Of a stretch of DNA of 64,000 bases, positions 2,107 to 46,036 are shown in pieces. Numbering within the stretch: the stretch's first letter is position 1; each line of letters begins with the position of its first letter. The notes below the pieces were generated by a model, which saw only the letters and a program-made list of their open reading frames with translations, had not been told where the DNA came from and made no database searches. This stretch comes from Azolla caroliniana (lineage: Eukaryota; Plantae; Polypodiophyta): NCBI GenBank assembly GCA_043228905.1, contig JBHGNT010000012.1:9858001-9922000 (forward strand), read 5' to 3'. Position numbers and translations under genes: made by a program.

Positions 2107-2138
2107 AAGTGGAGTTCTAACCACTAAACTACAACCAC
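2107..2138 (-). pseudogene. tRNA-His 5' half, truncated by gypsy LTR
   Basis: + strand AAGTGGAGTTCTAACCACTAAACTACAACCAC matches array tRNA positions 1-32. Confidence 0.85.
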
Positions 2139-2832
2139 CGAGTTTGTGTTGCCAAATTGGAACAAAGTCTTCACAACTACAACATGGAGTTGTAACCACT
2201 AAATATTGCCTTCCCCTGTTGCATGCATAAATTCATACGTACACTCTATATAGCATATTAGGGAAGTCTCCATAAAGGCATCCATAAATACGGACTTCTA
2301 ATCACTAAGACTTCACTTCGTATGTGGCTTGAATAAATTCATGTACACAATCTATATGACATATGACTCAAGTCTCGATTAAGCCATGGACAAATACATG
2401 TGACCATTCTATATGAAATATGAGCCAAGATTGCACTCGTGAAATTATTGTGCAATGTGGAAAATGAAAACTAATGATATGCCAACTTCATACGTAATAT
2501 GGGTTAAGTCCCTCAGACAATAATGTATAATGCCAAGCGGACTGTTTGTTGAGCTTGGGTCTCCATGACCATAACATGAAATTCTAACCACTAAAGGACA
2601 ACCATCAAATGCTTTTGAATTGAAAACAATGTTGGCTGGGACGAATATTTGAAAGGAACCTTTGTTGGGGATGGTGGGACGAATATTTGAAAGGAACCTT
2701 TGTTGGGGATGGTTGCTTGTAGTTTTTTGCTTAAATTAAATTTGTATGGTTCTTGGTTTTGGCAACCAACGTCCTATCTCAAATCCATTTGGATTCGAAG
2801 CATTTAACAAGTTGATATACACTCACTTTTGG

Positions 2833-2895
2833 TGTGGTTGCTGGGATTCGAGCCCAGGTCTCCACGGCCACAACGTGGAATTCTAACCACTAAAT
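2833..2895 (-). pseudogene. tRNA-His(GUG) 3' portion, split by copia A; 5' end at 8354-8367
   Basis: tRNA sequence runs to ...CCACTAAAT|TGTT (LTR start) and resumes as TAAACTACAACGAC at 8354. Confidence 0.9.
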
Positions 2896-2977
2896 TGTTG
2901 GGAGACAGGTCCCTCCGGATGGGAAGAGAGAAGAACACTGCTGATGAACAAACTCGGCCAAGGCCGATAGGCCGAAA

Positions 2978-3210
2978 CCGGTGAGAACAGGATGAGGAGT
3001 ACCCGGCTACGGAGAGCCGGATGGTGCAAACCCAGTGAGAACCGGATGAGGAGTACCCGGCTACGGAGAGCCAGATGGTGCAGACCTGGTGAGAACGGGA
3101 TGAGGAGTACCCGGCTACGGAGAGTTGGATGGTGCAGACCTGGTGATATCCGGATGAGGAGCACACGGCTACGGAGAGCCGAATGGTGCAGACCCGGTGA
3201 GAACCGGATG
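2978..3210 (+). repeat. 54-bp tandem repeat in copia A LTR (about 4 copies in the 5' LTR, about 2 in the 3' LTR at ~7771-7895)
   Basis: Unit CCGGTGAGAACCGGATGAGGAGTACCCGGCTACGGAGAGCCGGATGGTGCAGAC; 18-aa periodicity in ORF 2992..3264. Confidence 0.9.
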
Positions 3211-3699
3211 AAGAGACATATTCGTAAATATGTTTCTGAGAGTCCATCGAGGCTATATTTGTAAATAGCCGAAAAGTCATATTAGTATAAATATGACTTA
3301 GGGCAAACTTTTAGTTGTTGTTGTTGTTGTCATTCCTGTTTTGCACGAGATTAGAACGCGTAACAGTGTACAGAGAGAGAGAGAGAGAGAGAAAGAGGTC
3401 GCTCCCTCTGTTGTAACCGCCACCTGTGGTGAAGATCGTGAGCACAAGGTCCTTGCCTCCGTGAACTCACTGTTTGTACATTCCAACATAGTGATAGTTT
3501 GCAGCTTGTGGGCTGCCGTGGTTTTTTCCCTTAGTTTGGGTTTTCCACATAAATATCCTGTGTACCTTTTCTCTCCTTTGTGTTGTGAATTTACTTCCCG
3601 TTTTTTGTGTATGATTCTAAGGTCCGTTGTGGCCGAGCGTTGAGCATAAGGAACGACTAGTTCCCGTCAAGTGGTATTAGAGCGAAACGACACAGAAAA

Positions 3700-6600
3700 A
3701 TGGACGAATCGTTTGGCAGCATGTTCAAGCTCACCGGCTCCAACTATTCAGTGTGGAAGTCGAAGATGAGGGACATGCTCGTGTTTAAAGACCTCTGGCT
3801 GCCGGTTCAGTTCGGGGACAAGAGACCGGACAAAATCGACGCCGCGATATGGGAGGTGATGCACATGAAGACAACGGCGTACATACGGTGCTTCATCGAC
3901 ATGAGCCTGTACAACAACTTCAATGAAGAGAGCAAGGCTCATGAGCTCTAGGAGAAGATTGGCATAATGTTTCAAAACAAAAATGTTGTTAATCAGGTTT
4001 CAGTATTCCGGAAGCTAGTAAGACTCCGGTACCAAGATGGCTCCAGCATGGCGGAGCACATGAATGCCTTCTAGGGGCTGATCCACCAGGCAACTTCAAT
4101 GGAAGTACCTCTCGCCGATGAGGTACTAGCGCTACTCCTGCTCGGTTCCCTCCCGGATAGCTGGGAGACGTTGGTTGTCAGTTTGGGCAACGCCGGGCCA
4201 GAAGGAAAACGGTTATCCCTAGCAAGAGTAAAGTCGAGCTTGCTAGATGAGGAGGCGCGTCGGAAAGATAAAGATACGAGCTCCGACTCCAAAGCGCTCC
4301 TTACCGAATCGGAACGCAGAAGACATAGAAATCGTAGTCCCCAGAACCGGGAGAAGTCGGGGACACGGTCAAAGTCAAGGGGGAGGCCCACATTCTATTG
4401 CGGCAAGCCGGGACACTTCCAAAAGAACTGTCGGCATTTCCGAAAAGATAAGGAGACCGACGGTACCGATTCGAAGCGGACCCCGGACCGGAACGGTAAA
4501 GACCGGAGGGGGCCGGACTGGAAGGGAACGACGACAATCGCGGCAAGTGGCGACGAGATTACCTGGGTGGTAGACTCCGGAGCATCGTTCCACCTTACCC
4601 TAGACCGGAAATGCTTCTCATCCTATTCAGCCGGTGATCACGGCTGTGTCCGGATGGGGAATGAAGGTACATGCCGAATTGTCGGCATAGGAGACGTGTG
4701 GCTGTCAACACCAACGGGATGCAAGTTGCTGCTGAAGGATGTCTGACACGTTCCGGAGGTTCGTCTGAACCTGATATCAGCCGGTCGGCTAGATGATGAA
4801 GGCTACACGGGCAGCATCCGGAACGGTGTCATGAAGTTCAGCAAAGGGAGCCTGATTGTGGCTAGGGCCCGGAAGGTCAACACGTTGTACCTGATGAATG
4901 CTCGGTTATGTCCGGAAGAAGTGAACTTGGCATCCGACACTGCCGATGAGCTGTGGCACAAGAGACTATGTCATATGAGCGAGAAGGGGATGAAGAGGCT
5001 TGCAGACGACAATCTCATTCCAGTGAAGAACGTGCACTTGGAGAAGTGCACTGATTGTCTGGCTGGTAAGCAAAACCGGACCTCCTTCCGACCAAGGCCA
5101 CCGATGAGATGTAATGCACCACTGGAGTTGGTGCATACGGATGTGTGTCAAGTAGACACGAAGTGACATGCCGGAGCGCAGTACTTCGTGACGTTCATAG
5201 ATGACCATAGCCGGAAGCTGTGGGCCACACCGCTGAAGACGAAGGATCAGGTGCTATCCGTTTTCAAAGAGCTCCACGCGAGAGTAGAAAGAGAAACTGG
5301 CCGGAAGCTGAAGGCGGTTCGAGCAGATAACGGAGGAGAATACCGGGGGTAGTTCGAGGAGTACTGCCGCTCGAAGGGAATCCAGCTCGAATTTACCGTG
5401 CCGAAGACACCGGAACTAAACGGACTGGCCGAGAGGATGAACCGGACCATAATGGAGAGGGTCCGGAGTATGCTAGCACATGCAAAACTACCCAAGAAGT
5501 TTTGGGCTGAGGCACTGTCGACGGCGACATATGTGATAAACAGATCACCCTCAGTATTCTTGGACGGAGACACGCCACAGAGAGTATGGACCGGTAAGGA
5601 AGTGTCCTACCGGCATCTGAAGGTGTTCAGGTGTCTCGCGTACGTGCATGTAGCTAAGGACCAGAGAGGAAAGTTAGATCCAAAGACCCAGCCATGCATA
5701 TTCCTCGGTTACAGTGACGATGAGTTCAGCTACCGAGTGTGGGACCTGGTCGACAAGAAGGTATTCCGGAGTCGAGATATTATCTTCATGGAGGACAAGA
5801 CGCTCGCCGACTGGGAGTCGGAGAAGAAGATAATGAACTCCGAGTCGACTGGTAAGGATAGATTCTACGATGAGCCGACCCAACCGGCAAGAGATCGGTT
5901 AGCACTCGAGGAACCAGCCGGTTATGGTGAGGATACCGAACCGGCAGAAGAAGAAGTAGAGGAAGCTGAGACCGGAGCCGGCCTAGACCCCGAATTGGAT
6001 TCGGATGAAGAGCAAATGGAGGAGTCGGTTACCGAAGCCCAGAGACGGAGATATCCTCTCAGAGAGAGAAGGCCCCCCCGGAGATTTCCGGATGCAGAGA
6101 ATGTTCTGCTGACCGATGAGGGGGAGCCGGAAAGCTTCGAAGAAGCGAAGGAAGACACCCACAACCGAAAATGGTTAAGTGCCATGCAGGATGAGATGGA
6201 TTCCCTGCATGAGAACCATACGTACAAATTGGTGGAGTTGCCGAAAGGAAAGCAGGCACTCTGAAACAAGTGGGTGTACAAGTTGAAACCGGGAGATGCC
6301 GGCAACCCCCCGAGATACAAAGCCAGGATCGTGGTGAAGGGGTTCCAACAGAAGAAGGGCGTGGACTTCGACGAGATATTTGCCCCGGTAGTAAAGATGA
6401 CCTCCATCCGGACGGTGCTGAGTATAGCGGCAAGCATGGACCTCGAGGTAGAGCAGCTAGACATGAAGACGGCATTCCTTCACGGTGACCTCGAAGAAGA
6501 AATCTACATGCAGCAACCGGAAGGATTCGTGGAGAAAGGGAAGGAGCACCTGGTTTGCCGGTTGAAGAAGAGCCTCTACAGGTTAAAGTAGGCCCCCCGG

Positions 6601-7678
6601 CAATGGTACTGGAAGTTCGACTCCTTCATGAGCGATCAAGGGTACCACAAGACGCGGGCCGATCACTGCGTGTTTGTGAAGAAGTTTGTAGGAGGCGACT
6701 TCCTGATACTCCTTCTGTACGTGGACGACATGTTGATCGTCGGACGGGACCAAGTCAAAATACGGATGCTGAAGAAGGCTCTCAACCGGACCTTCTCAAT
6801 GAAAGACTTGGGTCGGGCAAGACAGATGCTGGGGATGCACATCATTTGGGACCGGTCAGCGAAGCAATTATGGCTGTCACAAAGGGAAGTACATGACAAA
6901 GGTGCTTCACCGGTTCAACATGTCAGATGCGAAACCGGTCGGATCGACACTTCCGACAAACTGCAAGCTATCCAGTAAGCAAAGCCCAAAGACGAAAGCA
7001 GAGAAGGCGGATATGATGAAGATTCCATATGCCTCTGCCGTTGGGAGCTTGATGTACGCAATGGTGTGTACCCAACCGGATATAGGAAACGCAGTCGGAG
7101 TGGTGAGCCGGTTTATGAGCAATCCCGGCAAGGAGCACTGGAACGTTGTCAAATGGATACTCCGGTATTTGAAGGGCACTTCAAATATGTGTCTCCGATT
7201 CGGCTCCGGAAGACCTCAACTTGACGGATTCACCGACTCGGACATGTCGGCTGATGTGGATACCAGCCGGTCTACATCCGGGTATGTAATGACATATGCA
7301 GGGGGAGCTGTTTCGTGGCAGTCGAGGTTGCAGAAGACGGTTGCATTGTCAACCACGGAGGCGGAGTACATGGCGGAAATATTATGGATGAAGGACCTCA
7401 TCGGAGAGCTCAGTATTCGACAAGATGAATACCGGCTCTACTGCGATAGTCAAAGTGCCATCCACCTTGCTAAGAATGCGGCCTACCATTCCCGGATGAA
7501 GCATATCCAGCGAAGGTATCCCTGGATCCAGGAAAGAGTAGATGACCAGGAGTTCGCACTGTCGAAGATCCACACGGTTGAGAACGAGTCAGATATACTG
7601 ACCAAAGTTCTGATACCCGACAAGCTGGATGCATGCCGGAAGCGGATCGGACTGATAAGACACCCCATGCCGGAGTGA
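3700..7678 (+). pseudogene. Copia A gag-pol (Gag/zinc knuckle, PR, IN, RT, RNase H) with stops and frameshifts
   Basis: FYCGKPGHFQKNC, WVVDSGAS, LWHKRLCH, PELNGLAERMNRT, LLYVDDMLI, GFTDSD, STTEAEY. Confidence 0.95.
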
Positions 7679-8337
7679 AGGGGGAGTTTGTTTGGAGACA
7701 GGTCCCTCCGGATGGGAAGAGAGAAGAACAGTGCCGATGAACAAACTCGGCCAAGGCCGATAGGCCGAGACCGGTGAGAACCGGATGAGGAGTACCCGGC
7801 AACGGAGAGCCGGATGGTGCAGACCCGGTGAGATCTGGATGAGGAGTACCCGGCTACGGAGAGGCGGATGGTGCAGACCCGGTGAAAACCAAATGAAGAG
7901 ACATATTCGTAAATATGTTTCTGAGAGTCCATCGAGGCTATATTTGTAAATAGCAGAAAAGTCATATTAGTATAAATATGACTTAGGGCAAACTTTTAGT
8001 TGTTGTTGTTGTTGTCATTCCTGTTTTGCACGAGATTAGAGCGCGTAACATTGTACAGAGAGAGAGAGAGAGAAAGAGGTCGCTCCCTCTGTTGTAACCG
8101 CCGCCTGTGGCGAAGATCGTGAACACGAGGTCGTTGCCTCCGTGAACTCACTGTTTGTACATTCCAACATAGTGATAGTTTGCAGCCTGTGGGCTGTCGT
8201 GGTTTTCTCCCTTAGTTTAGGTTTTCCACGTAAACATCCTGTGTACCTTATCTCTCCTTTGTGTCGTGAATTTACTTCCCGTTTTCTGTGTATGATTCTA
8301 AGGTCGGTTGTGGCCGAGCGTTGAGCATACGGAACGA

Positions 8338-8358
8338 CTAAAACCCTAAACCCTAAAC
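8338..8358 (-). repeat. Short interstitial plant telomere repeat (TTTAGGG)2+ at the copia A 3' LTR/tRNA junction
   Basis: + strand CTAAAACCCTAAACCCTAAAC. AAACCCTAAACCC replaces the LTR terminus GTTCCCGTCA seen at 3660-3669. Confidence 0.85.
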
Positions 8359-9022
8359 TACAACGACGGAGTTTGTGTTGCCAAATTGGAACAAAGTCTT
8401 CACAACTACATCATGGAGTTGTAACCACTAAATATTGCCTTCCCATGTTGCATGCATAAATTCATAGCTCCACTCTATATAACATATTAGGGAAGTCTCC
8501 ATAAAGGCATCCATAAATATAGACTTCTCATCACTAAGACTTGACTTCGTATGTCGCGTGAATAAATTCATCTACACAATCTATATGACATATGACTGAA
8601 GTATCGATTAAGTCATGGACAAATACATGTGCGCATTCTATATGAAATACAAGCAAAGATTGCACTCGTGAAATTATTGTGCAATGTGGAAAACGAAAAC
8701 CAATGCTATGCTAACTTCATACGTAATATGGGTTAAGGCGCTCGGCAATAATGTATAATGCAAGGCTGACTGCTTGTTGAGCTTAGGTCTCCATGACCAT
8801 AACATGAACCTCTAACCACTAAAGTACAACCATCAAATGCTTTGGAATTGAAAACAATGTTGGCTGGGACGAATATTTGAAAGGAACCTTTGTTGGGGAC
8901 GGTTGCTCGTAGTTTTTTACTTCAATTAAATTTGTATGGCTCTTGGTTTTGGCAACAAATTTCCTATCTCAAATCCATTGGAATTCGAAACATTTAACAA
9001 GTGGATATACACTCACTTTTGG

Positions 9023-9094
9023 TGTGGTTGCTGGGATTCGAGCCCAAGTCTCCACGGCCACAACGTGGAATTCTAACCACTAAACTACAACCAC
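9023..9094 (-). tRNA. tRNA-His(GUG), one T-stem G-U variant
   Basis: 72-nt cloverleaf, anticodon loop TT-GTG-GC, followed by CCA. Confidence 0.9.
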
Positions 9095-9750
9095 AAAATT
9101 TGTGTTGCCAAATTGGAACCAAATCTTCACAACCACAACATGGAGTTGTAACCAATAAATATTGTCTTCCCATGTTGCATGCATAAATTCATACCTAGAC
9201 TCTATATAACATATTAAAGATGGCTCCATAAAGGCATCGAAAAATACGGACTTCTAATCACTAAGACTTGATTTCGTATGTGGCATGAATAGATTCAAGT
9301 ACACAATCTATATGACATATGACTAAAGTGTCGATTAACCTATGGACAAATACTTGTGCACATTCTATATGAATTACGAGCCAAGATTGCACTTGTGAAA
9401 TTATTGTGCAATGTGGAAAATGAATACTAATGATATTGCAATTTCATAGGTAATATGGGTTATTGCGCTCAGACAATAATGTATAATGCCAAGCGGACTA
9501 TTTGTTGAGTTTAGGTCTCCATGACCATAACATGAAATTCTAACCACTAAAGGACAACCATAAAATGCTTTTGAATTGAAAACAATGTTGGCTAGGACAA
9601 ATATTTCAAAGGAACCTTTGTTTGGGATGGTGGCTCGTAGTTTTTTGCTTAAATTAAATTTATATGGTTCCTGGTTTTGGCAACCAACTTCCTATCTCAA
9701 ATCCATTTGGATTCGAAGCATTTAACAAGTTGATATAGACTCACTTTTGG

Positions 9751-9822
9751 TGTGGTTGCTGGGATTCGAGCCCAGGTCTCCACGGCCACAACGTGGAATT
9801 CTAACCACTAAACAACAACCAC
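9751..9822 (-). tRNA. tRNA-His(GUG), A9>T variant
   Basis: All stems intact; encoded CCA. Confidence 0.88.
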
Positions 9823-10478
9823 GGAGTTTGTGTTGCCAAATTGGAACAAAGTTTTCACAACTACAACATGGAGTTGTAACCACTAAATATTGCCTTCCCA
9901 TGTTGCATGCATAAATTCCTACCTACACTCTATATAACATATTAAAGATGTCTCCATAAAGGCATCCAGAAATATGGACTTCTAATCGCTAAGACTTGAC
10001 TTCGTATGTGGCGTGAATAGATTCATGTACACAATCTATATGACATATGACTCAAGTGTGGATTAAGCCATGGACAAATACATGTGCACATTCTATAGGA
10101 AAGACGAGCCAAGATTGCACTCGTGAAATTATTGTGCAATGTGGAAAATGAATACTAATGATATGCCAACATCATATGTAATATGGGTTAAGGCGCTCAG
10201 ACAATAATGTATAATCCCAAGCGGACTATTTGTTGAGCTTAGGTCTCCATGACCATAACATGAAATTCTAACCACTAAAGGACAACCATAAAATGCTTTT
10301 GAATTGAAAACAATGTTGGCTGGGACGAATATTTCAAATGAACCTTTGTTTGGGATGGTTGGTCGTTGTTTTATGCTTAAATTAAATTTATATGGTTCTT
10401 GGTTTTGGCAACCAACTTCCTATCTTAAATCCATTGGGATTCGAAGCATTTAACAAGTGGATGTACACTCACTTTTGG

Positions 10479-10550
10479 TGTGGTTGCTGGGATTCGAGCC
10501 CAGGTCTCCACGGCGACAACATGGAATTCTAACCACTAAACAACAACCAC
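10479..10550 (-). tRNA. tRNA-His body with anticodon mutated to GTC (Asp); likely non-functional
   Basis: + strand CCACGGCGACAACATGG = minus CCATG TT-GTC-GC CGTGG; also A9>T. Confidence 0.7.
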
Positions 10551-11206
10551 GGAGTTTGTGTTGCCAAATTGGAACAAAGTTTTCACAACTACAACATGGA
10601 GTTGTAAGCACTAAATATTGCCGTCCCATGTTGCATGCTTAAATTCATACCTACATGTTGTATAACATATTAAAGATGTCTCCATAAAGGCATTCAGAAA
10701 TACGGACTTCTAATCACTAAGACTTGATTTCCTATGTGGCGTGAATTGATTCATGTACACAATCTATATCACATATGACTCAAGTGTAGATTAAGCCATG
10801 GACAAATACATGTGCACATTCTATATGAAATACGAGCCAAGATTGCACTCTTGAAATTATTGTGCAATGTGGGAAATGAAAACTAATGATATGCCAACTT
10901 CATACGTGATATGGGTTAAGGCCTTCAGGCAATAATGTATAATGCCAAGCTGACTATTTGTTGAACTTAGGTCTCCATGACCATATCATGAACTTCTAAC
11001 TAATAACGTACAACCATCAAATGCTGTGGAATTGAAAACAATGTTGGCTGGGAAGAATAGTTGATAGGAACCTTTGTTGGGGATTGTGGCTCGTAGTTTT
11101 TTGCTAAAATTAAATTTGTATGGTTCTTGGTTTTCGCAACCAACTTCCTATCTCAAATCCATTTGGATATGAAGCATTTAACAAGTTGACATAGATTCAC
11201 TTTTGG

Positions 11207-11278
11207 TGTGGTTGCTGGGATTCGAGCCTAGGTCTCCACGGCCACAACGTGGAATTAAAACCACTAAACTACAACCAC
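11207..11278 (-). pseudogene. tRNA-His(GUG) with D-arm and T-stem lesions
   Basis: GAGCCTAGG and GGAATTAAAACC differ from the array consensus. Confidence 0.75.
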
Positions 11279-12203
11279 GGAGTTTGTGTTGCCAAATTGG
11301 AACAAAGTCTTCACAACTACAACATGGAGTTGTAACCACTAAATGTTGGCTTCCCCTGTTGCATGCATAAATTCATACATACACTCTATATAACATATTA
11401 AAGATGTCTCCATAAAGGCATCCAAAAATATGGACTTCTAATTACTAAGACTTGATTTCCTATGTGGCGTGAATAGATTCATGTACACAATCTATATCAC
11501 ATATGACTCAAGTCTCGATTAAACCATGGACAAATACATGTGCACATTCTATATGAAATACGAGCCAAGATTGCACTCTTGAAATTATTGTGCAATGTGG
11601 AAAATGAAAACTAATGATATGCCAACGTCATACAAAATATGGGTTAAGGCCCTTAGACAATAATGTATACTGCCAAGCCGACTATTTGTTGAGCTTAGGT
11701 CTCCATGACCATAACATGAAATTCTAACCACTAAAGGACAACCATAAAATGCTTTTGAATTGAAAACAATTTTGGCTGGGACGAATATTTCAAAGGAACC
11801 TTTGTTTGGGATGGTTTGTCGTAGCTTTTTGCTTAAATTAAATTTATATGGTTCTTGGTTTTGGCAACCAACATCCTATCTTAAATCCATTGGGATTCGA
11901 AGCATTTAACAACTTCCAATATTGCACTCGTAAAATTATTCCGCAATGTGGAAAACGAAAACTAATGATATGCAACATCATAAGTAATACGGGTTAAGGC
12001 CCTCAGGTAACCATCAAATGCTTTGGAATTGAAAACAATGTTGGCTGGGACGAATATTTGAAAGGAACCTTTGTTGGGGACGGTTGCTCGTAGTTTTTTA
12101 CTTCAATTAAATTTGTATGGCTCTTGGTTTTGGCAAAAAATTTCCTATCTCAAATACATTGGAATTCGAAACATTTAACAAGTGGATATACATTCACTTT
12201 TGG

Positions 12204-12275
12204 TGTGGTTGCTGGGATTCGAGCCCAGGTCTCCACGGCCACAACGTGGAATTCTAACCACTAAACTACAACCAC
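12204..12275 (-). tRNA. tRNA-His(GUG), intact consensus
   Basis: GTGGTTGTAGTTTAGTGGTTAGAATTCCACGTTGTGGCCGTGGAGACCTGGGCTCGAATCCCAGCAACCACA followed by CCA; plant-type C54 T-loop. Confidence 0.96.
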
Positions 12276-12931
12276 GGAGTTTATGTTGCCAAATTGGAAC
12301 AAAGTCTTCACAACTGCAACATGGAGTTGTAACCACTAAATATTGCCTTCCGATGTTGCATGTATAAATTCATACCTACACTCTATATAACATATTAAAG
12401 ATGGTTCCATAAAGGCATCCAGAAATACGGACTTCTAATCACGAAGACTTGATTTCGTATGTGGCGTGAATAAAGTCATGTACACAATCTATATCACATA
12501 TGACTCAAGTCTCGACTAAGCCATGGACAAATACATGTGCACATTCTATATGAAATACGAGCCAAGATTGCACTCTTGAAATTATTGTGCAATGTGGAAA
12601 ATAAAAACTAATGATATGCCAACTTCATACAAAATATAGGTGAAGGCCCTCAGACAATAATGTATAATGCCAAGTTGACTATTTGTTGAGCTTAGGTTTC
12701 CATGACCATTACGTAAACATCTAGCCACGAAAGTACAACCATCAAATGCTTTTTACTTGTAAACAATCTTGGCTAGGACGAATATTTGAAAGGAACCTTT
12801 CTTCGGGATGGTTGCTCGTAGTTTATTGCTTAAATTAAATATGTATGGTTCATGTTTTTGGCAACCAACTTCCTATCTCAAATCCATTTGGATTCGAAGC
12901 ATTTAACAAGTTGATATAGACTCACATTTGG

Positions 12932-13003
12932 TGTGGTTGCTGGGATTCGAGCCCAGGTCTCCACGGCCACAACGTGGAATTCTAACCACTAAACTACAAC
13001 CAC
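12932..13003 (-). tRNA. tRNA-His(GUG), intact consensus
   Basis: Identical to consensus; 14-bp deletion in the 5' flank. Confidence 0.95.
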
Positions 13004-13645
13004 GGAGTTGGAACAAAGTCTTCACAACTACAACATGGCGTTGTAACCACTAAATATTGCCTTCCCATGTTGCATGCATAAATTCATACCTAGACTCTAT
13101 ATAACATATTAAAGATGTCCCCATAAAGGAATCCAGAAATATGGACTTCTAATCACTAAGACTTGATTTCGTATGTGGCGTGAATAGATTCATGTACACA
13201 ATCTATAGGACATATGACTCAAGTGTGGATTAAGTCATGGACAAATACATGTGAACATTCTATATGGAAGACGAGCCAAGATTGCACTCGTGAAATTTTT
13301 GTGCAATGTGGAAAATGAATACTAATGATATGCCAACTTCATATGTAATATGGGTTAAGGCGCTCAGACAATAATGTATACTGCCAAGCGGACTATTTGT
13401 TGAGCTTAGGTCTCCATGACCATAACATGAAATTCTAACCAGTAAAGGACAACCAGAAAATGCTTTTGAATTGAAAACAATATTGGCTGGGACGAATATC
13501 TCAAAGGATCCTTTGTTTGGGATGGTTGGTCGTAGTTTTTTGCTTAAATTAAATTTATATGGTTCTTGGTTTTGGCAACCAACTTCCTATCTTAAATCCA
13601 TTGGGATGTGAAGCATTTAACAAGTTGATAAGGACTCACTTTTGG

Positions 13646-13717
13646 TGTGGTTGCTGTGATTCGAGCCCAGGTCTGCACGGCCACAACGTGGAATTCTAAC
13701 CACTAAACTACAACCAC
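13646..13717 (-). pseudogene. tRNA-His(GUG) with T-stem and anticodon-stem mismatches
   Basis: CTGTGAT and GTCTGCACGG variants. Confidence 0.7.
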
Positions 13718-14373
13718 GGAGTTTGTGTTGCCAAATTGGAACAAAGTCTTCACAACTACAACATGCAGTTGTAACCACTAAATATTGCCTTCCCATGTTG
13801 CATGCATAAATTCATACCTAGACTCTATATTACATATTAAAGATGTCCCTATAAAGGAATCCGGAAATATGGACTTCTAATCACTAAGACTTGATTTCGT
13901 ATGTGGCGTGAATAGATTCATGTACACAATCTATAGGACATATGACTCAAGTGTGGATTAAGCCATGGACAAATACATGTGAATATTCTATATGGAAGAC
14001 GAGCCAAGATTGCACTCGTGAAATTTTTGTGCAATGTGGAAAATGAATACTAATGATATGCCAACTTCATATGTAATATGGGTTAAGGCGCTCAGACAAT
14101 AATGTATACTGCCAAGCGGACTATTTGTTGAGCTTAGGTCTCCATGACCATAATATGAAATTCTAACCAGTAAAAGAAAACGAGAAAATGCTTTTAAATT
14201 GAAAACAATGTTGGCTGGGACGAATATCTCAAAGGATCCTTTGTTTGGGATGGTTGGTCGTAGTTTTTTGCTTAAATTAAATTTATATGGTTCTTTGTTT
14301 TGGCAACCAACTTCCTATCTTAAATCCATTGGGATATGAAGCATTTAACAAGTTGATATAGACTCAGTTTTGG

Positions 14374-14445
14374 TGTGGTTGCTGGGATTCGAGCCCAGGT
14401 CTCCACAGCCACAACGTGGAATTCTAACCACTAAACTACAACCAC
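14374..14445 (-). tRNA. tRNA-His(GUG), G31-U39 variant
   Basis: Single C>T in the anticodon stem. Confidence 0.88.
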
Positions 14446-15100
14446 GGAGTTTGTGTTGCCAAATTGGAACAAAGTCTTCACAACTACAACATGGTGTTGT
14501 AACCACTAAATATTGCCTTCCCATGTTGCATGCATAAATTCATACCTAGGCTCTATATTACATATTCAAGATGTCCCCATAAAGGAATCCAGAAATATGG
14601 ACTTCTAATCACTAAGACTTGATTTCGTATGTGGCGTGAATAGATTCATGTACACAATCTATAGGACATATGACTCAAGTGTGGATTAAGCCATGGACAA
14701 ATACATGTGAACATTCTATATTGAAGACGAGCCAAGATTGCACTCGTGAAATTTTTGTGCAATGTGGAAAATGAATACTAATGATATGCCAACTTCATAT
14801 GTAATATGGGTTAAGGCGCTCAGACAATAATGTATACTGCCAACCGGACTATTTGTTGAGCTTAGGTCTCCATGACCATAACATGAAATTCTAACCAGTA
14901 AAGGACAACCAGAAAAAGCTTTTGAATTGAAAACAATGTTGGCTGGGACGAATATCTCAAAGGTTCCTTTGTTTGGGATGGTTGGTCGTAGTTTTTTGCT
15001 TAAATTAAATTATATGGTTCTTGGTTTTGGCAACCAACTTCCTATCTTAAATCCATTGGGATATGAAGCATTTAACAAGTTGATATAGACTCACTTTTGG

Positions 15101-15172
15101 TGTGGTTGCTGGGATTCGAGCCCAGGTCTCCACGGCCACAACGTGGAATTCTAACCACTAAACTACAACCAC
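15101..15172 (-). tRNA. tRNA-His(GUG), intact consensus
   Basis: Identical to consensus, with CCA. Confidence 0.96.
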
Positions 15173-15828
15173 GGTGTTTGTGTTGCCAAATTGGAACAAA
15201 GTCTTCACAACTACAACATGGAGTTGTAACCACTAAATATTGCCTTCCCATGTTGCATGCATAATTTCATACCTAGACTCTATATTACATATTAAAGATG
15301 TCCCTATAAAGGAATCCGGAAATATGGACTTCTAATCACTAAGACTTGAATTCGTATGTGGCGTGAATAGATTCATGTACACAATCTATAGGACATATGA
15401 CTCAAGTGTGGATTAAGTCATGGACAAATACATGTGAACATTCTATATAGAAGACGAGCCAAGATTGCACTCGTGAAATTATTGTGCAATGTGGAAAATG
15501 AATACTAATGATATGCCAACTTCATATGTAATATGGGTTAAGGCGCTCAGACAATAATGTATACTGCCAACCGGACTATTTGTTGAGCTTAGGTCTCCAT
15601 GACCATAACATGAAATTCTAACCAGTAAAGGACAACCAGAAAAAGCTTTTGAATTGAAAACAATGTTGGCTGGGACGAATATCGCAAAGGTTCCTTTGTT
15701 TGGGATGGTTGGTCGTAGTTTTTTGCTTAAATTAAATTTATATGGTTCTTGGTTTTGGCAACCAACTTCCTATCTTAAATCCATTGGGATATGAAGCATT
15801 TAACAAGTTGATATAGACTCAGTTTTGG

Positions 15829-15900
15829 TGTGGTTGCTGGGATTCGAGCCCAGGTCTCCACGGCCACAACGTGGAATTCTAACCACTAAACTACAACCAC
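15829..15900 (-). tRNA. tRNA-His(GUG), intact consensus
   Basis: Identical to consensus, with CCA. Confidence 0.96.
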
Positions 15901-16556
15901 GGAGTTTGTGTTGCCAAATTGGAACAAAGTCTTCACAACTACAACATGGAGTTGTAACCACTAAATATTGCCTTCCCATGTTGCATGCATAAATTCATAC
16001 CTAGACTCTATATTACATATTAAAGATGTCCCTATAAAGGAATCCGGAAATATGGACTTCTAATCACTAAGACTTGATTTCGTATGTGGCGTGAATAGAT
16101 TCATGTACACAATCTATAGGACATATGACTCAAGTGTGGATTAAGTCATGGACAAATACATGTGAACATTCTATATGGAAGACGAGCCAAGATTGCACTC
16201 GTGAAATTTTTGTGCAATGTGGAAAATGAATACTAATGATATGCCAACTTCATATGTAATATGGGTTAAGGCGCTCAGACAATAAGGTATACTGCCAAGC
16301 GGACTATCTGTTAAGCTTAGGTTTCCATGACCATAACATGAAATTCTAACCAGTAATGCACAACCAGAAAATGCTTTTGAATTGAAAACAATGTTGGCTG
16401 GGACGAATATCTCAAAGGATCCTTTGTTTGGGATGGTTGGTCATAGTTTTTTGCTTAAATTAAATTTATATGGTTCTTGGTTTTGGCAACCAACTTCCTA
16501 TCTTAAATCCATTGGGATTTGAAGCATTTAACAAGTTGATATAGACTCAGTTTTGG

Positions 16557-16628
16557 TGTGGTTGCTGGGATTCGAGCCCAGGTCTCCACGGCCACAACGT
16601 GGAATTCTAACCACTAAACTACAACCAC
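16557..16628 (-). tRNA. tRNA-His(GUG), intact consensus
   Basis: Identical to consensus, with CCA. Confidence 0.96.
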
Positions 16629-17283
16629 GGAGTTTGTGTTGCCAAATTGGAACAAAGTCTTCACAACTACAACATGGAGTTGTAACCACTAAATATTGCC
16701 TTCCCATGTTGCATGCATAAATTCATACCTAGACTCTATATAACATATTAAAGATGTCTCCATAAAGGCATCCAGAAATACGGACTTCTAATCACTAAGA
16801 CTTGATTTCGTATGTGGCGTGAATAGATTCATGTACACAATCTATATCACATATGACTCAAGTCTTGATTAGGCCATGGACAAATACATGTGCACATTCT
16901 ATATGAAATACGAGCCAAGATTGCACTCTTGAAATTATTATGAAATGTGGAAAATGAAAACTAATGATATGCCAACTTCATACGTAATATGGGTTAAGGC
17001 CCTCGACAATAATGTATAATGCCAAGCGGACTATTTGTTAAACTTAGGTCTCCATGACCATTACGTAAACATCTAACCACTAAAGTACAACCATCAAATG
17101 CTTTTGAAATTAAAATAATCTTGGCTAGGAGGAATATTTGAAAGGAACCTTTGTTGGGGATGGTTACTCGTAGTTTTTTGCTTAAATAAAATTTGTATGG
17201 TTCTTGGTTTTGGCAACCAACTTCTTATCTCAAATCCATTTGGATGCGATGCATTTAACAAGTTGATATAGACTCAGTTTTGG

Positions 17284-17355
17284 TGTGGTTGCTGGGATTC
17301 GAGCCCAGGTCTCCACGGCCACAACGTGGAATTCTAACCACTAAACTACAACCAC
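17284..17355 (-). tRNA. tRNA-His(GUG), intact consensus
   Basis: Identical to consensus, with CCA. Confidence 0.96.
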
Positions 17356-18010
17356 GGAGTTTATGTTGCCAAAATGGAATAAAGTCTTCACAACTACAAC
17401 ATGGAGTTGTAACCACTAAATATTGCCTTCCCATGTTGCATGCATAAATTTATAGTTACACTCTATATAATATATTAGGGAAGTCTCCATAAAGGCATCC
17501 ATAAATACAGACTTCTAATCACTAAGACTTGATTTCGTATGTGGTGTGAATAAATTCATGTATACAATCTATATGACATATGACTCAAGTGTGCATTAAG
17601 CCATGGACAAATACATGTGCGCATTCTATATGAAATAGAAGCCAATATTGCACTCGTGAAATTATTTTGCAATGTGGAAAATGAAAACTAATGATATGCA
17701 ACATCATAGGTAATACGGTTTACGGCCCTCCTACAATAATGTATAATGCAAAGTTGACTGTTTGTTGAGCTTAGGTCTCCATGACCATAACATGAACTTT
17801 GAACCACTAAAGTATAACCATCAAATGCTTTTGAATTGAAAACAATGTTGGCTAGGACGAATATTTGAAAGGAACCTTTGTTGGGGATGGTTACTCGTAG
17901 TTTTCTGCTAAAATAAAATTTGTATGGTTCTTGGTTTTGGCAACCAACTTCTTATCTCAAATCCATTTGGATGCAATGCATTTAACAAGTTGATATAGAC
18001 TCAGTTTTGG

Positions 18011-18082
18011 TGTGGTTGCTGGGATTCGAGCCCAGGTCTCCACGGCCACAACGTGGAATTCTAACCACTAAACTACAACCAC
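18011..18082 (-). tRNA. tRNA-His(GUG), intact consensus
   Basis: Identical to consensus, with CCA. Confidence 0.96.
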
Positions 18083-18737
18083 GGAGTTTGTGTTGCCAAA
18101 ATGGAATAAAGTCTTCACAACTACAACATGGAGTTGTAACCACTAAATATTGCCTTCCCATGTTGCATGCATAAATTTATAGTTACACTCTATATAATAT
18201 ATTAGGGAAGTCTCCATAAAGGCATCCATAAATACAGACTTCTAATCACTAAGACTTGATTTCGTATGTGGTGTGAATAAATTCATGTATACAATCTATA
18301 TGACATATGACTCAAGTGTGGATTAAGCCATGGACAAATACATGTGCGCATTCTATATGAAATAGAAGCCAATATTGCACTCGTGAAATTATTTTGCAAT
18401 GTGGAAAATGAAAACTAATGATATGCAACATCATAGGTAATACGGTTTACGGCCCTCCGACAATAATGTATAATGCAAAGTTGACTGTTTGTTGAGCTTA
18501 GGTCTCCATGACCATAACATGAACTTCGAACCACTAAAGTATAACCATCAAATGCTTTTGAATTGAAAACAATGTTGGCTGGGACGAATATTTGAAAGGA
18601 ACCTTTGTTTGGGATGGTGGCTTGTAGTTTTTTGCTTAAATTCAATTTGTATGGTTCTTGGTTTTGGCAACCAACTTCCTATCCTAAATACATTGGGATT
18701 CAAAGCATTTAACAAGTCGATATAGACTCACTTTTAG

Positions 18738-18809
18738 TGTTGTTGCTGGGATTCGAGCCCAGGTCTCCACGGCCACAACGTGGAATTCTAACCACTAAAC
18801 TACAACCAC
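18738..18809 (-). tRNA. tRNA-His(GUG) with an acceptor-stem mismatch; CCA changed to CTA
   Basis: + strand TAGTGTTGTTGCTGGG versus consensus TGGTGTGGTTGCTGGG. Confidence 0.75.
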
Positions 18810-19464
18810 GGAGTTTGTGTTGCCAAAATGGAATAAAGTCTTCACAACTACAACATGGAGTTGTAACCACTAAATATTGCCTTCCCATGTTGCATGCATA
18901 AATTTATAGTTACACTCTATATAATATATTAGGGAAGTCTCCATAAAGGCATCCATAAATACAGACTTCTAATCACTAAGACTTGATTTCGTATGTGGTG
19001 TGAATAAATTCATGTATACAATCTATATGACATATGACTCAAGTGTGGATTAAGCCATGGACAAATACATGTGCGCATTCTATATGAAATAGAAGCCAAT
19101 ATTGCACTCGTGAAATTATTTTGCAATGTGGAAAATGAAAACTAATGATATGCAACATCATAGGTAATACGGTTTACGGCCCTCCGACAATAATGTATAA
19201 TGCAAAGTTGACTGTTTGTTGAGCTTAGGTCTCCATGACCATAACATGAACTTCGAACCACTAAAGTATAACCATCAAATGCTTTTGAATTGAAAACAAT
19301 GTTGGCTGGGACGAATATTTGAAAGGAACCTTTGTTTGGGATGGTGGCTTGTAGTTTTTTGCTTAAATTCAATTTGTATGGTTCTTGGTTTTGGCAACCA
19401 ACTTCCTATCCTAAATACATTGGGATTCAAAGCATTTAACAAGTCGATATAGACTCACTTTTAG

Positions 19465-19536
19465 TGTTGTTGCTGGGATTCGAGCCCAGGTCTCCACGGC
19501 CACAACGTGGAATTCTAACCACTAAACTACAACCAC
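19465..19536 (-). tRNA. tRNA-His(GUG), same variant as 18738-18809
   Basis: Shares both substitutions with the adjacent copy. Confidence 0.75.
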
Positions 19537-20178
19537 GGAGTTGGAACAAAGTCTTCACAACTACAACATGGAGTTGTAACCACTAAATATTGCCTTCCCA
19601 TGTTGCATGCATAAATTCATAGCTACAATCTATATAACATATTAGGGAGGTCTCCATAAAGGCATCCATAAATACGGACTTGTAATCACTAAGAATTCAC
19701 TTCGTATGTGGAGTGAATAAATTCATGTACACAATCTATATAACATATGACTCAAGGCTCGATTAAGCCATGGACAAATACATGTGCACATTCTATATGA
19801 AATACGAGCCAAGATTGCACTCGTGAAATTATTGTGCAATGTGGAAAATGAATACTAATGATATGCTAACTTCATATGTAATATGGGTTAATGCGCTCAG
19901 ACAATTATGTATAATGCCAAGCAGACTATTTGTTGAGCTTAGGCCTCCATGACCATAACATGAAATTCTAACCAGTAAAGGACAACCATAAAATGCTTTT
20001 GAATTGAAAACAATGTTGGCTGGGACGAATATTTCAAAGGAACCTTTGTTTGGGATGGTGGCTCGTAGTTTTTTGCTTAAATTAAATTTATATGGTTCTT
20101 GGTTTTGGCAACCAACTTCCTATCTCAAATCCATTTGGATTCGAAGCATTTAACAAGTTGATATAGACTAACTTTTGG

Positions 20179-20250
20179 TGTGGTTGCTGGCATTTGAGGT
20201 TAGGTCTCCACGGCCACTACGTGGAATTCTAACCACTAAACTACAACCAC
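20179..20250 (-). pseudogene. tRNA-His pseudogene, T-arm/B-box destroyed
   Basis: CTGGCATTTGAGGTTAGG instead of CTGGGATTCGAGCCCAGG; U33 also altered. Confidence 0.85.
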
Positions 20251-20604
20251 AAAGTTTGTGTTGCCAAATTGGAACAAAGTCTTCACAACTACAACATGGA
20301 GTTGTAACCACTAAATATTGCCTTCCCATGTTGCATGCATAAATTCATACCTACACTCTGTATAACATATTAAAGATGTCTCAATAAAGGCATCCATAAA
20401 TATGGACTTCTAATCGCTAGGACTTGACTTCGTATGTGGTGGGAATAAATTCATGTACACAATCTATATGACATATGACTCAAGTCTCGATTAAGCAATG
20501 GACAAATACATGTGCACATTCTATATGAAATACGAGCCAAGATTGCACTCTTGAAATTATTGTGCAATGTGGAAAATGAAAACTAATGACATTCCAACTT
20601 CATA

Positions 20605-20771
20605 CCTTGCCGAATTCAAAAACTAATAGTTTTCGCACGTGAATGTCTACTGAATTTCGGGGTTTAGATGGAGATTCATGCGCAAGTCTCGACTGTGACG
20701 ACCTCGAATTTTAACCATTGAGTCGAGTTTTTTGGTCAAATTAACTATTATCGTTGTTTGAATTTTGCATG
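20605..20771. mobile_element. MITE-like insertion (~167 bp) in the array spacer; diverged second copy at ~22596-22750
   Basis: Absent from core units. Imperfect TIRs TGCCGAATTCAAAAAC..TAATAGTT / AACTATTA..GTTTGAATTTTGCA; TA on both sides. Confidence 0.55.
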
Positions 20772-21010
20772 TACACATTCGATACGTAATATGGGTCAAG
20801 GCCCTCTAATAACAATGTATAATGCCAAGATCATTGTTTTCCGCGCTTAGGTCTCCATGACCATAACGTGGACATCTAACAACTAAAGCACAACCATCAA
20901 ATGCTTTTCAATCGAAAACAATTGTGATTGAGGCGAATATTTGAAAGGAACCTTTCTTGGGGGTGGTTGGTCGTAGGCTTTTGCTTAAATTAAATTATTA
21001 TTGTTCTTGG

Positions 21011-21636
21011 TACACCTTTTACACCCATTTGAAACCAATCGGTTAGCAATGTCGGGGAGGATCACCCATGTCCCATGTGTCGTTGGAATCAAGTGCCCGC
21101 ATCTCTTCCTCCATTGCGACATACAAATTCGCGGCTTTTTCCGCCTCTGCATAGCTCTCCGGCTAACGCACTCCGCCACCTTGCTCATGTACGCATAATG
21201 ATGCTCCATGTAGTCATTATACCCATACCATTTGACGGGGTTCTTCTGGCGGGTTGATCAACGTAACTACTCGTTTCCTGATTTTAAGGCTCTCTTTGCT
21301 GACTCAGACTTCGTAACCGAAGGTTCGTCTTCTTTCCTTCTGATTTGACTCGTCTCTACAATTTGTCATTTTCTTCTTCCCTTTTTCTTTGCGCATGAAC
21401 CGTCACCTCAATTCCTTACATCGGGAAAATACAGCCAACTCTCCATTACTCGCCGGCTCTTCATCTCACTGGTCAATCCTACCCAATCACTCATTCGTCC
21501 CAATTAGTAGGAATGAATTCAAACTCTCATCGAGAGTTGCAGACTCTTCTTCTTCGTCTGCTCGGATCGTTTCAGGCTCATTGGCCTCATACTCTGGAAT
21601 TGGTTTGGAGTCGGACATCGGAGTTAGCAGAGCGTA
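21011..21636 (-). mobile_element. LTR-less copia internal fragment (IN-RT linker and RT start; B/D family) replacing about 245 bp of a unit, including its tRNA
   Basis: Minus strand encodes ...YGYNDYMEHHYAYMSKVAE..., homologous to 57092-57301 and 30061. Array sequence resumes near 21637. Confidence 0.8.
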
Positions 21637-22202
21637 CTACCTCTACACTCTATATAACATATTAGGGAAGTCTCCATAAAGGCACCCATAAATATGGAAT
21701 TCTAATCACTAAGACTTGACTTCCTATGTGGCGTGAATAAGTTCATGTACACAATCTATATGACATATGAGGCAAGTCTAGATAAAGCCATGGACAAATA
21801 CATGTGCACATTCTATATGTAATATGACCCAATATTACACTCGTGAAATTATTTTGCAATATGGAAAATGAAAACTAATGATATGCCAACTTCATACGTA
21901 ATATGGGTTAAGGCCCTCCGACAGTAATGTATTTAAATGCCAAGTTGATTGTTTGTTGAGCTTAGGTCTCCATGACCATAACGTAGACTTCTAACCACTA
22001 AAGTATAACCATCAAATGCTCTTCAATTAAAAATAATATTGGTTAGGATGAACATTTGATAGGAACCTTTGTTGGGGTTGGTTGATCATAGTTTTTTGCT
22101 CAAATTAAATAGTTATGGTTCTTGGTATTTGCAACTAACTTTCTATCTCAAATCCATTGGGATTTGAATCATCTTTAGAAGTTGATATAGACTCACTTTA
22201 GG

Positions 22203-22274
22203 AGTGGGTGGTGGGATTCGAGCCCAGGTCTCCACGGCTACAACGTGGAATTCTAACCACTAAACTAGAACCAC
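22203..22274 (-). pseudogene. Diverged tRNA-His pseudogene (anticodon GTA, acceptor-stem lesions)
   Basis: + strand AGTGGGTGGTGGGATTCGAGCCCAGGTCTCCACGGCTACAACGTGG... Confidence 0.8.
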
Positions 22275-23534
22275 CGAGTTTGTATTGCCAAATTGGAACT
22301 AAGTCTTCACAACCGCAACATGGACTTGTAACCACTAAGTACTGCCTTCAAATGTTGCATGCATAAATTCATAGCTACATTCTATATAACATATTAGGCA
22401 AGTCTCCATAAAGGCATCCATAAATATGGAATTCTAATCACTAAGGCATCCAATCTATATGGTATATATGGCAAGTCTCCATAAAGCCATGAACAAATTC
22501 ATGTGCACATTCTATATGAAATAGGAGACATGATTGCACTTGTGACAACATTGTGTAATGTGGAAAAGGAAAACCACTGATATGCCAATTTCATACCCTG
22601 CCGAATTCAAAATTTAACAGTTTTTGCACGTGAATGTACACTGAATTTCAGGGTCCTGAATGCGATTCATGGACAAGTCTCAACTGCGACGACCTCGAAT
22701 TTTAACCATTGAGTCAATTTTTTTGCTCAAATCAATTATTATGGTTGTTTACATTAATATGGGTCAAGGCTCTCCGACGACAATGTATAATGCCAAGCTC
22801 ATTGTTTGTTGAGCCTAGGTCTCCATGAGCATCACCTGAACTTCTAACCACTAAAGTAAACGATCAAATGCTTTTCAATTGAAAACAATCTTGGCGGGGA
22901 TGAACATTTGAAAGGAAATGTTGAGCGAGAAAGCTCAACCAGATCCTGATTGGCTGTAGAAGCCTGAGCCGGATTGGCATCCAGAAGAATGAGCCAAATC
23001 GGTATCCGGATGGTACCGGAAACAACCAGCCAGATCGGGGAGACAGATCGGAGAGCTATATTCGAGCGGGAACCGGAAGCCTAGTAATAGCCTAGACTAC
23101 TAGGTAATCATTGTCTTGTAGTTAGTGTTAGTCGCACGTAGGAATATTGAAGTACCCGTAAGTACTTCTGTCAGTCCTTTATGGACTTGTATAAATAGTG
23201 TTGTTTAGCACGTTGTATGTATAGAGTTGTAGAGTTATTTTGAAAAACGTTTACGTTCTGCTCTCTCTGTCTATCCTGTGTATAGTCTCTCTATGTATTA
23301 AGCTTCTCCATTAAACCTCTTATTCTCTGTTGCTATCCGGCTGATCCAGTTCTATGTAACGCTTCCACACGTTTACATTTACATGGTATCAGAGCTCGAG
23401 GGTTGAGAACCTCTACAACCGACACTTGCTTCCGTAGACAAACTCTAGAACCCTCTGATAACAGATAGAGAGAATACATGGACAGAGGAATTGCGAGTTG
23501 ACTTCTAACAGAGAAGCTCGATTGGAGCAACTAT

Positions 23535-41039: not shown

Positions 41040-41082
<43 letters not shown>

Positions 41083-46010: not shown

Positions 46011-46036
46011 CCAAACGGCTCCTATTTTGGCTGGAC

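Follow-up and report, generated by a model that had tools for sequence, protein, structure and literature searches.

A tandem, satellite-like array of tRNA-His(GUG) genes, probably maintained in part, among retrotransposons of the fern Azolla caroliniana

Here we describe a head-to-tail array of tRNA-His(GUG) genes in the genome of the fern Azolla caroliniana (assembly GCA_043228905.1, contig JBHGNT010000012.1, positions 9,858,001 to 9,922,000 of the forward strand; this whole stretch of 64,000 nucleotides is referred to as the window, and all coordinates are those of the window). Between 2104 and 22917 of its minus strand lie 17 full-length tRNA-His(GUG) copies together with one split and one partial copy, and the array as a whole amounts to about 21 unit equivalents, head to tail, of a 728-bp unit. 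With moderate confidence, we regard it as a tandemly amplified, satellite-like cluster of nuclear cytosolic-type tRNA-His(GUG) genes that is partly maintained, and we demonstrate that the tRNA is conserved relative to the spacer in which it is embedded. A reading of the bare sequence made beforehand (the original prediction) had proposed a tandem, satellite-like tRNA-His array amid long terminal repeat (LTR) retrotransposons by which both of its ends are cut, and this proposal is supported by the analysis presented below.

Results

Copy number and unit structure

ARAGORN called 16 minus-strand tRNAs between 9020 and 22274, of which 14 were His-GUG, one had a GUC and one a GUA anticodon, and the Rfam tRNA model recovered all of these and also the split copy's 3' part at 2841-2896. 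BLAST with a perfect copy as the query added the decayed copy at 20179-20250 (six mismatches), the split copy's 5' 15 nt at 8353-8367 and a truncated copy at 2104-2138 (positions 1-35). The resulting count is exactly the one that the original prediction had given for a spacing of ~728 bp. The 5' ends of the full-length copies are at 9094, 9822, 10550, 11278, 12275, 13003, 13717, 14445, 15172, 15900, 16628, 17355, 18082, 18809, 19536, 20250 and 22274, and individual copies are named by them hereafter; all copies are derived from tRNA-His and share one orientation. The seven identical perfect cloverleaves that had been predicted are likewise real: the copies 12275, 13003, 15172, 15900, 16628, 17355 and 18082 are identical across 72 nt and score 64.5 bits each with the Rfam tRNA model, whose gathering score is 29 bits, and the Infernal alignment of the perfect copy gives a complete cloverleaf with anticodon GUG and discriminator A73. 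With three more copies at 59.9-61.6 bits, well above the same cut-off, the array thus contains canonical tRNAs.

Thirteen of the 16 units in the core of the array are 727/728 bp long, two measure 714 bp and one 997 bp. At the 727/728-bp spacing, 6-7 tRNA copies fall within 5 kb, compared with the at least five tRNA genes within 5 kb by which a plant tRNA homocluster is recognized (PMC13437025), and the single isotype, the same orientation and the homologous flanks are also those of a homocluster. At the same time, the array has the features of a satellite, namely a long head-to-tail non-coding monomer, local homogenisation and decayed edges. An open reading frame (ORF) scan found no ORF of at least 77 aa inside the array core (the longest is not above 76 aa), and an Rfam scan of two units with E up to 1 found no other Rfam family in the unit, one weak below-threshold hit aside.

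Conservation of the tRNA relative to the spacer

Equal divergence of tRNA and spacer, which the original prediction had named as the outcome that would speak against it, was seen neither in nucleotide diversity nor in parsimony nor in a comparison of expected with observed changes. Nucleotide diversity is 0.032 in the tRNA versus 0.090 in the spacer, and the tRNA is the lowest of 656 sliding 72-column windows. On a tree built from the spacer only, the 72 tRNA columns require 18 parsimony steps versus 347 for the 655 spacer columns (0.25 versus 0.53 per site; binomial p = 4e-4), and in parsimony steps, too, the tRNA is the lowest of 727 circular 72-bp windows (mean 36, standard deviation 8). 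From the spacer distance of the units to the consensus, 63.7 tRNA differences would be expected and 19 were seen, and from spacer divergence 0.57 unchanged copies would be expected and seven were seen, in a test whose assumption of independence overstates the p-values. The seven perfect copies represent at least five separate spacer lineages that are scattered over the spacer tree. That spacers differ between units, as claimed originally, is borne out by a mean pairwise spacer identity of 91.0% (range 87.6-100%), which is 91.0% also among the seven units with a perfect tRNA.

Altogether, the tRNA has undergone 2-3 times fewer changes than the spacer, the difference by parsimony being about two-fold and not absolute. 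This slower change spans the whole tRNA and not the A and B boxes alone. Compared with the spacer, the tRNA has a higher content of G+C and CpG, so that a lower mutation rate is not to be expected there. Mild conservation was seen also in the 80 bp upstream of the tRNA (0.375 versus 0.55 steps per site, p = 0.02).

State of the copies and RNA polymerase III signals

Damage to individual copies was judged by covariance-model scores combined with manual pairing on the Infernal structure; minimum-free-energy folding of single copies does not give the cloverleaf and was left out of these calls. Three single changes are mild, two of them making G-U pairs and one altering position 9. Stem-breaking changes are present in copies 11278 and 13717, and copies 18809 and 19536 share a G-A mismatch in the acceptor stem. 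Judged in this way, about 10 of the 19 copies look usable. In the good copies, both the A box (TAGTTTAGTGG) and the B box (GGCTCGAATCC) are intact when compared by eye with the textbook consensus. The array flank of the tRNA reads CCAAAAGTGAG..., and most units carry a CAA triplet at -8 to -6, a motif that enhances transcription by RNA polymerase III (Pol III) in plants (PMC13578239). The first 25 nt downstream contain seven T residues, never more than two in a row, the corresponding numbers being about 14 in angiosperms and about 8 in non-flowering plants (PMC13578239). The observed/expected ratio of CpG in the spacer is 0.44, and this value, together with a context rich in transposable elements (TEs), would fit silent, methylated surroundings.

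Layout of the array

Mapping of the consensus unit divides the array into three parts, left (2104-2894), core (8368-20250) and right (20251-22917), of which the left part comprises one and a fraction units and is parted from the core by an insertion of 5.46 kb. The individual features are listed in the order of their coordinates.

2104..2138, minus strand: truncated tRNA-His copy with positions 1-35, cut off by the terminus of the LTR-type element that occupies 1-2103
2139..2832, minus strand: spacer of the left-most complete unit, 90.7% to the consensus, with a 38-bp internal duplication at 2637-2713
2833..2894, minus strand: split tRNA-His, 3' part (positions 11-72), 62/62 identical
2895..8352, plus strand: Ty1/copia LTR retrotransposon within the tRNA, with LTRs, primer-binding site (PBS) and target duplication
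8353..8367, minus strand: split tRNA-His, 5' part (positions 1-15), carrying G3>C
8368..20250, minus strand: array core, 16 head-to-tail units, each starting with a tRNA-His copy
9023..9094, minus strand: tRNA-His, one change, C48>U (G-U pair), 61.2 bits
9751..9822, minus strand: tRNA-His, one change, A9>U, 59.9 bits
10479..10550, minus strand: tRNA-His-derived copy with anticodon GUC (Asp-type) and two other changes, 56.4 bits
11207..11278, minus strand: tRNA-His, three changes (D arm, T stem), 54 bits
12204..12275, minus strand: perfect tRNA-His(GUG), 64.5 bits
12932..13003, minus strand: perfect tRNA-His(GUG), 64.5 bits
13646..13717, minus strand: tRNA-His, two stem-breaking changes, 51 bits
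14374..14445, minus strand: tRNA-His, one change, C39>U (G-U pair), 61.6 bits
15101..15172, minus strand: perfect tRNA-His(GUG), 64.5 bits
15829..15900, minus strand: perfect tRNA-His(GUG), 64.5 bits
16557..16628, minus strand: perfect tRNA-His(GUG), 64.5 bits
17284..17355, minus strand: perfect tRNA-His(GUG), 64.5 bits
18011..18082, minus strand: perfect tRNA-His(GUG), 64.5 bits
18738..18809, minus strand: tRNA-His, acceptor-stem mismatch C69>A, 58.4 bits
19465..19536, minus strand: tRNA-His, same C69>A acceptor-stem mismatch as copy 18809
20179..20250, minus strand: dead tRNA-His copy, six changes including the B box, uncalled by ARAGORN and Rfam
20251..22917, minus strand: older, diverged right-hand part, about 3.5 variant units of roughly 900 bp, 78-95% to the consensus
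20605..20781, minus strand: extra 177-bp segment of the variant unit, 84.5% to 22596-22754; also in a metagenome contig (L004)
21012..21642, no strand assigned: transposon-related fragment of 631 bp, 73-79% to 30061-30257 and 57059-57264
22203..22274, minus strand: decayed copy, anticodon GUA (Tyr-type), 3' strand of the acceptor stem broken, 40.3 bits
22596..22754, minus strand: second copy of the extra variant-unit segment, 84.5% to 20605-20781

In two of the right-hand units, the extra segment of 160-177 bp enters at consensus column 375 and thus gives rise to the variant unit of roughly 900 bp, and the transposon fragment at 21012-21642 occupies the place of one expected tRNA copy. The 997-bp core unit harbours a complex rearrangement at 11916-12008, in which consensus columns 1-267 are followed by columns 351-441 and then by a restart at column 92. 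An identical deletion of 14 bp (TTTGGCAACACAAA region, flanked by CAA microhomology) is found in two non-adjacent units, at 13004-13020 and 19537-19553, that is, upstream of tRNAs 13003 and 19536; the spacers of these units are only 93% identical, and the shared deletion reflects either recurrent slippage or a variant spread by exchange.

Spacer divergence and growth of the array

Neighbouring units are 93.3% identical in their spacers, versus about 90% for units at least three units apart. Young blocks are found at 13717-16628 (97-98%) and at 18082-19536 (96.5-100%), and the youngest duplication is that of the adjacent units 18809 and 19536, whose spacers are 100% identical. This pattern, with young neighbours in the array and old ~900-bp variants at its edge, is as expected from unequal crossing-over or replication slippage in a single-unit register.

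Substitutions in the spacer are rich in transversions, the ratio of transitions to transversions in 8368-20250 being 0.72 (118:160 by variant count). In pairs of LTR and other TE duplicates from the same window (33351-47687) the ratio is 1.8-6 (291:102 in total), and in tRNA-His arrays of a related family termed A (contigs L005, L010, L011, L012 and L017, from independent short-read assemblies; see below) it is 0.73. The AT-richness of the spacers (32-35% G+C) may account for part of this transversion excess.

A composite unit with tRNA fossils

When the tRNA was aligned locally with the remainder of the consensus unit (the best of 200 shuffles scored 28), a same-strand tRNA-His relic covering tRNA positions 2-55 was found at column 262 with a score of 72. 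A second relic, at column 653, scores 47 and lies directly upstream of the live gene, a third, at column 546, scores 29 versus the shuffle maximum of 28, and two weaker collinear tRNA pieces lie near column 385. The 728-bp unit is thus composite: besides an intact tRNA-His, it holds three or more tRNA-His pieces that are older and decayed and lie in the same orientation. These relics are common to all units, which argues that the unit came from an older, denser tRNA-His array, of which no more than one copy would have remained intact by the time of the 728-bp unit's amplification. In all fossil copies it is the A-box stretch (TTTAGTGGTTAGAA) that is best preserved; their B boxes are degenerate, and fossil columns 252-288 belong to the unit's most variable ones.

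The weak Rfam match mentioned above, to a flavivirus stem-loop family at 15203-15261 and 15931-15989 on the minus strand (24.6 bits, below the gathering score of 38.3), covers the fossil tRNA just upstream of each live tRNA and is almost certainly a chance hairpin.

Related tRNA-His arrays in metagenome contigs

Relatives of the array were sought by an exact 40-nt search of metagenome contigs. Seventeen contigs (L001-L017) matched, all from one ENA assembly series, ERZ1034375 to ERZ1034427, and they probably contain DNA of the fern host. Contig L004 carries a ~900-bp variant of the window unit with 88% identity and a tRNA that is identical in 72 of 72 positions. Shorter repeats form family A, an array of 355-370 bp in L005, L010, L011, L012, L013 and L017, and family B, an array of 420-440 bp in L003, L006 and L014, whose upstream flank and first ~65 nt downstream are homologous to those of the window array; L009 and L015 contain a fourth tRNA-His family. 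There are hence at least four tandem tRNA-His families, with periods of about 355-370, 420-440, 728/900 and about 500-600 bp. At the start of the 3' flank, the bases C-N-AAA are common to families A, B and C, which suggests that one progenitor locus may underlie all three. Given several tandem families in related contigs, tRNA-His satellites appear to be recurrent in this fern lineage, with most copies decaying and the window array among the better kept.

Retrotransposon insertion and array ends

The insertion between the left part and the core is bounded by LTRs at about 2896-3673 and 7689-8340 that are 5-7% diverged. Its 5' LTR is followed by a PBS resembling the initiator-tRNA (iMet) type, a polypurine tract precedes its 3' LTR, and it encodes a retroviral-polymerase SH3-like domain that is found also in the copia-type integrase ORF at 55605-57140 of the window. 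A 5-bp target duplication, CTAAA, occurs at 2890-2894 and 8353-8357 and corresponds to tRNA positions 11-15. Taken together, these features show that the element truly integrated into a tRNA copy. At the end of the 3' LTR, the final ~10 nt (which read GTTCCCGTCA in the 5' LTR) have given way to AAACCCTAAACC (8338-8357 versus 3650-3675), that is, to about two plant telomere-type repeats, which adjoin the CTAAA duplication inside the tRNA. The tRNA's own sequence (GTTTAGTGG) resembles the telomere repeat, and both LTRs contain a 54-bp tandem repeat, in 4.4 copies at 2978-3215 and in 2.2 copies at 7771-7890.

At the left end of the array, an LTR-type terminus (...AACA) adjoins a tRNA that breaks off at position 35 (2103/2104), and the array may continue beyond this insertion. 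At the right end it adjoins an LTR-type element starting with TGTTGAGC... at about 22919, and consensus mapping found no further unit sequence to the right of the array within the 64-kb window, the remaining 41 kb of which contain Ty1/copia and Ty3/gypsy (chromodomain) genes. The end of the window (63416-64000) consists of 1.8 copies of a 319-bp tandem repeat (95%) that is 81-84% similar to the start of the right-end LTR element (22918-23015).

Discussion

How the array may have arisen and what may maintain it

The unit has multiplied in a single-unit register, presumably via unequal exchange or slippage, and LTR retrotransposons subsequently entered the array and cut it. We propose that the tRNA part is kept by weak purifying selection within a gene family that is redundant; as a cause of the conservation, short ectopic conversion from other tRNA-His copies, of which there are many, is less likely. 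The intact copies could be transcribed by Pol III from the internal promoter. By analogy with the Pro and Ser-Tyr-Tyr clusters of Arabidopsis, the array would probably be repressed in most tissues and would contribute at most a conditional or minor share of tRNA-His.

Several observations weigh against a maintained array. The constraint is modest, with other 72-bp windows reaching 21-22 steps versus the 18 of the tRNA, and there are ~10 independent windows per unit, so that the lowest rank alone is weak evidence. Nine of the 19 copies are damaged, two of them in their anticodons, which changed to GUC (10550) and GUA (22274), and expression and charging of these two copies would do harm. At -35 to -20, the units show neither a TATA-like nor a specially AT-rich block, and no run of four T residues (T4) was found within 60 nt downstream of the tRNA in any unit; none occurs before +64, and the first T4 is mostly at +169. 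The absence of a nearby T4 is atypical for efficient Pol III genes and counts against efficient expression, even if it is not decisive. One copy has been occupied by the retrotransposon for so long that the two LTRs now differ by 5-7%. Finally, the tRNA of family A is much decayed, its diversity being 0.14 versus 0.23 in the spacer in a comparison that is biased by exact-match selection. As to the missing terminator, a tRNA-snoRNA dicistronic gene would account for it; this was rejected for known families, Rfam having found only the tRNA and the weak hairpin.

If all copies were pseudogenes of a passive satellite, and the conservation of the tRNA came from short ectopic conversion or from a locally lower mutation rate, much of this would be readily understood: the lack of a T4 terminator near any copy, the damage to half of the copies with anticodon changes included, the tolerance of the copia insertion, the decayed array edges with a TE fragment in place of one tRNA, and the largely decayed state of the related arrays; donor copies for conversion, moreover, are abundant. 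We nevertheless consider such a satellite possible but rather unlikely, as no window of the unit has changed so little as the tRNA, with seven unchanged copies versus 0.6 expected, and as its higher G+C and CpG content should raise and not lower its mutation rate. Besides, 72 bp is short for efficient ectopic conversion. Of the roles that the original prediction had suggested, a tRNA reservoir, a TFIIIC boundary and a tRNA-fragment source, none received support from this analysis. It is also conceivable that the array serves not to supply tRNA-His at all, acting instead as a chromatin element, that is, as a cluster of TFIIIC/Pol III sites (boundary, nuclear positioning), or giving rise to tRNA fragments or small RNAs. 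The best-kept A-box stretch (TTTAGTGGTTAGAA) in all fossils and the somewhat conserved 80 bp upstream (p = 0.02), which are themselves fossil tRNA, would agree with such a role, and tRNA genes are known to influence chromatin (cited in 10.1101/2021.12.21.473619). The degenerate B boxes of the fossils, the variability of fossil columns 252-288, which are among the unit's most variable, and a conservation that extends over the whole tRNA and not over the boxes alone make this role highly improbable in our view. Nor does much speak for an assembly artefact in which an array was made out of a few copies. It is true that assemblies are prone to errors in tandem repeats and that two adjacent units have identical spacers; yet the units are otherwise ~9% different and show unit-specific indels, rearrangements, a TE insertion with target duplication and a graded decay towards the edges, and the same unit family occurs together with several sister arrays in independent short-read assemblies, so that an artefact is scarcely credible.

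The origin of the founder is a separate question, and a retro-origin is compatible with maintenance as well as with the other readings. The G at -1 and the CCA of eukaryotic tRNA-His are both added after transcription, and a reverse-transcribed mature tRNA-His is for this reason a possible founder, as is a tRNA-His SINE (short interspersed nuclear element), with amplification then proceeding at the DNA level. In every unit, CCA follows directly after A73 and is itself followed by AAA, and the old edge units (2138, 22274), L004 and the family B contigs have G at -1. The residue at -1 is, however, C in the core units and T in family A, the combination of G and CCA has a chance expectation of about 1 in 256 and was noticed post hoc, poly(A) or LINE (long interspersed nuclear element) tails and per-unit target duplications are absent, and the tRNA is a full 64.5-bit cloverleaf and not a diverged SINE head; we therefore regard a retro-origin as unlikely. 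A tRNA-derived SINE in the strict sense was rejected, the copies being strictly tandem and the tRNA complete, with neither tail nor per-unit duplication. More doubtful still is the broader proposal that most or all cytosolic tRNA-His genes of this fern lineage descend from one progenitor with G-1 and CCA (a reverse-transcribed mature tRNA) and now reside in satellite families lacking canonical Pol III terminators. If it were true, tRNA-His would be supplied from satellite DNA, with long read-through trailers or non-canonical termination.

Significance and comparison with known systems

The partly maintained array that we favour is an incremental example when taken on its own. Together with its sister families, it suggests that tandem, satellite-like amplification is a main source of fern tRNA numbers and that such amplification also affects isotypes of rare amino acids such as His. 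The locus moreover offers a clean natural test of selection on a redundant RNA gene, with ~20 copies and a neutral spacer as an internal control. According to PlantRNA 2.0, Azolla has thousands of tRNA genes and >10,000 tRNA-like sequences, the organisation of which it leaves unexplained (10.1101/2021.12.21.473619). According to recent surveys, land-plant tRNA genes are mostly dispersed, with clustering in the restricted isotypes Pro, Ser/Tyr, Gln, Ala and Ile (PMC13437025, PMC13578239).

The original prediction had presented a His-only array of this architecture as one without known precedent, and in this it went too far: tandem tRNA homoclusters are well documented in plants (PMC7544208, PMC11700998, PMC12652284, PMC13437025), and Zhang et al. 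report tandem tRNA duplicates for 21 amino-acid classes (PMC12652284). Our literature search found no paper describing a His-only tRNA array or tRNA arrays or satellites of ferns.

The closest systems are the tRNA-Pro homocluster on chromosome 1 of Arabidopsis thaliana and that species' Ser-Tyr-Tyr cluster (Theologis 2000; Hummel et al. 2020, PMC7544208; Hummel et al. 2025, PMC12308677). Like the fern array, they repeat a unit of a few hundred bp head to tail, dozens of times; every unit carries a tRNA gene, and the flanks are homogeneous within a cluster. There is one isotype per homocluster, and they lie in or next to heterochromatin. For the Arabidopsis clusters, both silencing and reactivation have been shown (PMC7544208, PMC12308677). 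The fern array differs from them in its His isotype, its longer unit (728 bp) and the fossil tRNA copies that the unit contains, and it has no poly(T) near the gene; a conserved downstream poly(T) is present in the Arabidopsis Pro cluster (PMC13437025). The tRNA-Ile and tRNA-Ala arrays of maize, the tRNA-Gln clusters of barley and the moss (Cpu) clusters of up to 26 identical genes (PMC11700998, PMC13437025, PMC12652284) also go back to a single tRNA gene that was tandemly amplified in the lineage concerned, and their flanks are uniform as well; in comparison, the fern array is older, half decayed and interrupted by retrotransposons.

Further afield, tRNA-derived SINEs and satellites likewise repeat a tRNA-related Pol III promoter module, and the CCA followed by an A-rich stretch hints at an RNA intermediate; in the fern array, by contrast, the tRNA is complete and canonical, the head-to-tail spacing is fixed, and there are neither LINE-like tails nor target duplications of the units. 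In Entamoeba, long tandem arrays whose units contain several different tRNA genes and short tandem repeats take up a large share of the genome. Both systems are built of tandem tRNA units, the fern array having one isotype and behaving as an ordinary satellite. Among the plant clusters described so far, it is set apart by its composite, fossil-bearing unit, the lack of a nearby poly(T), its age and its decay, and it is a new example, of the His isotype and from a fern, of the known tandem tRNA gene clusters of plants.

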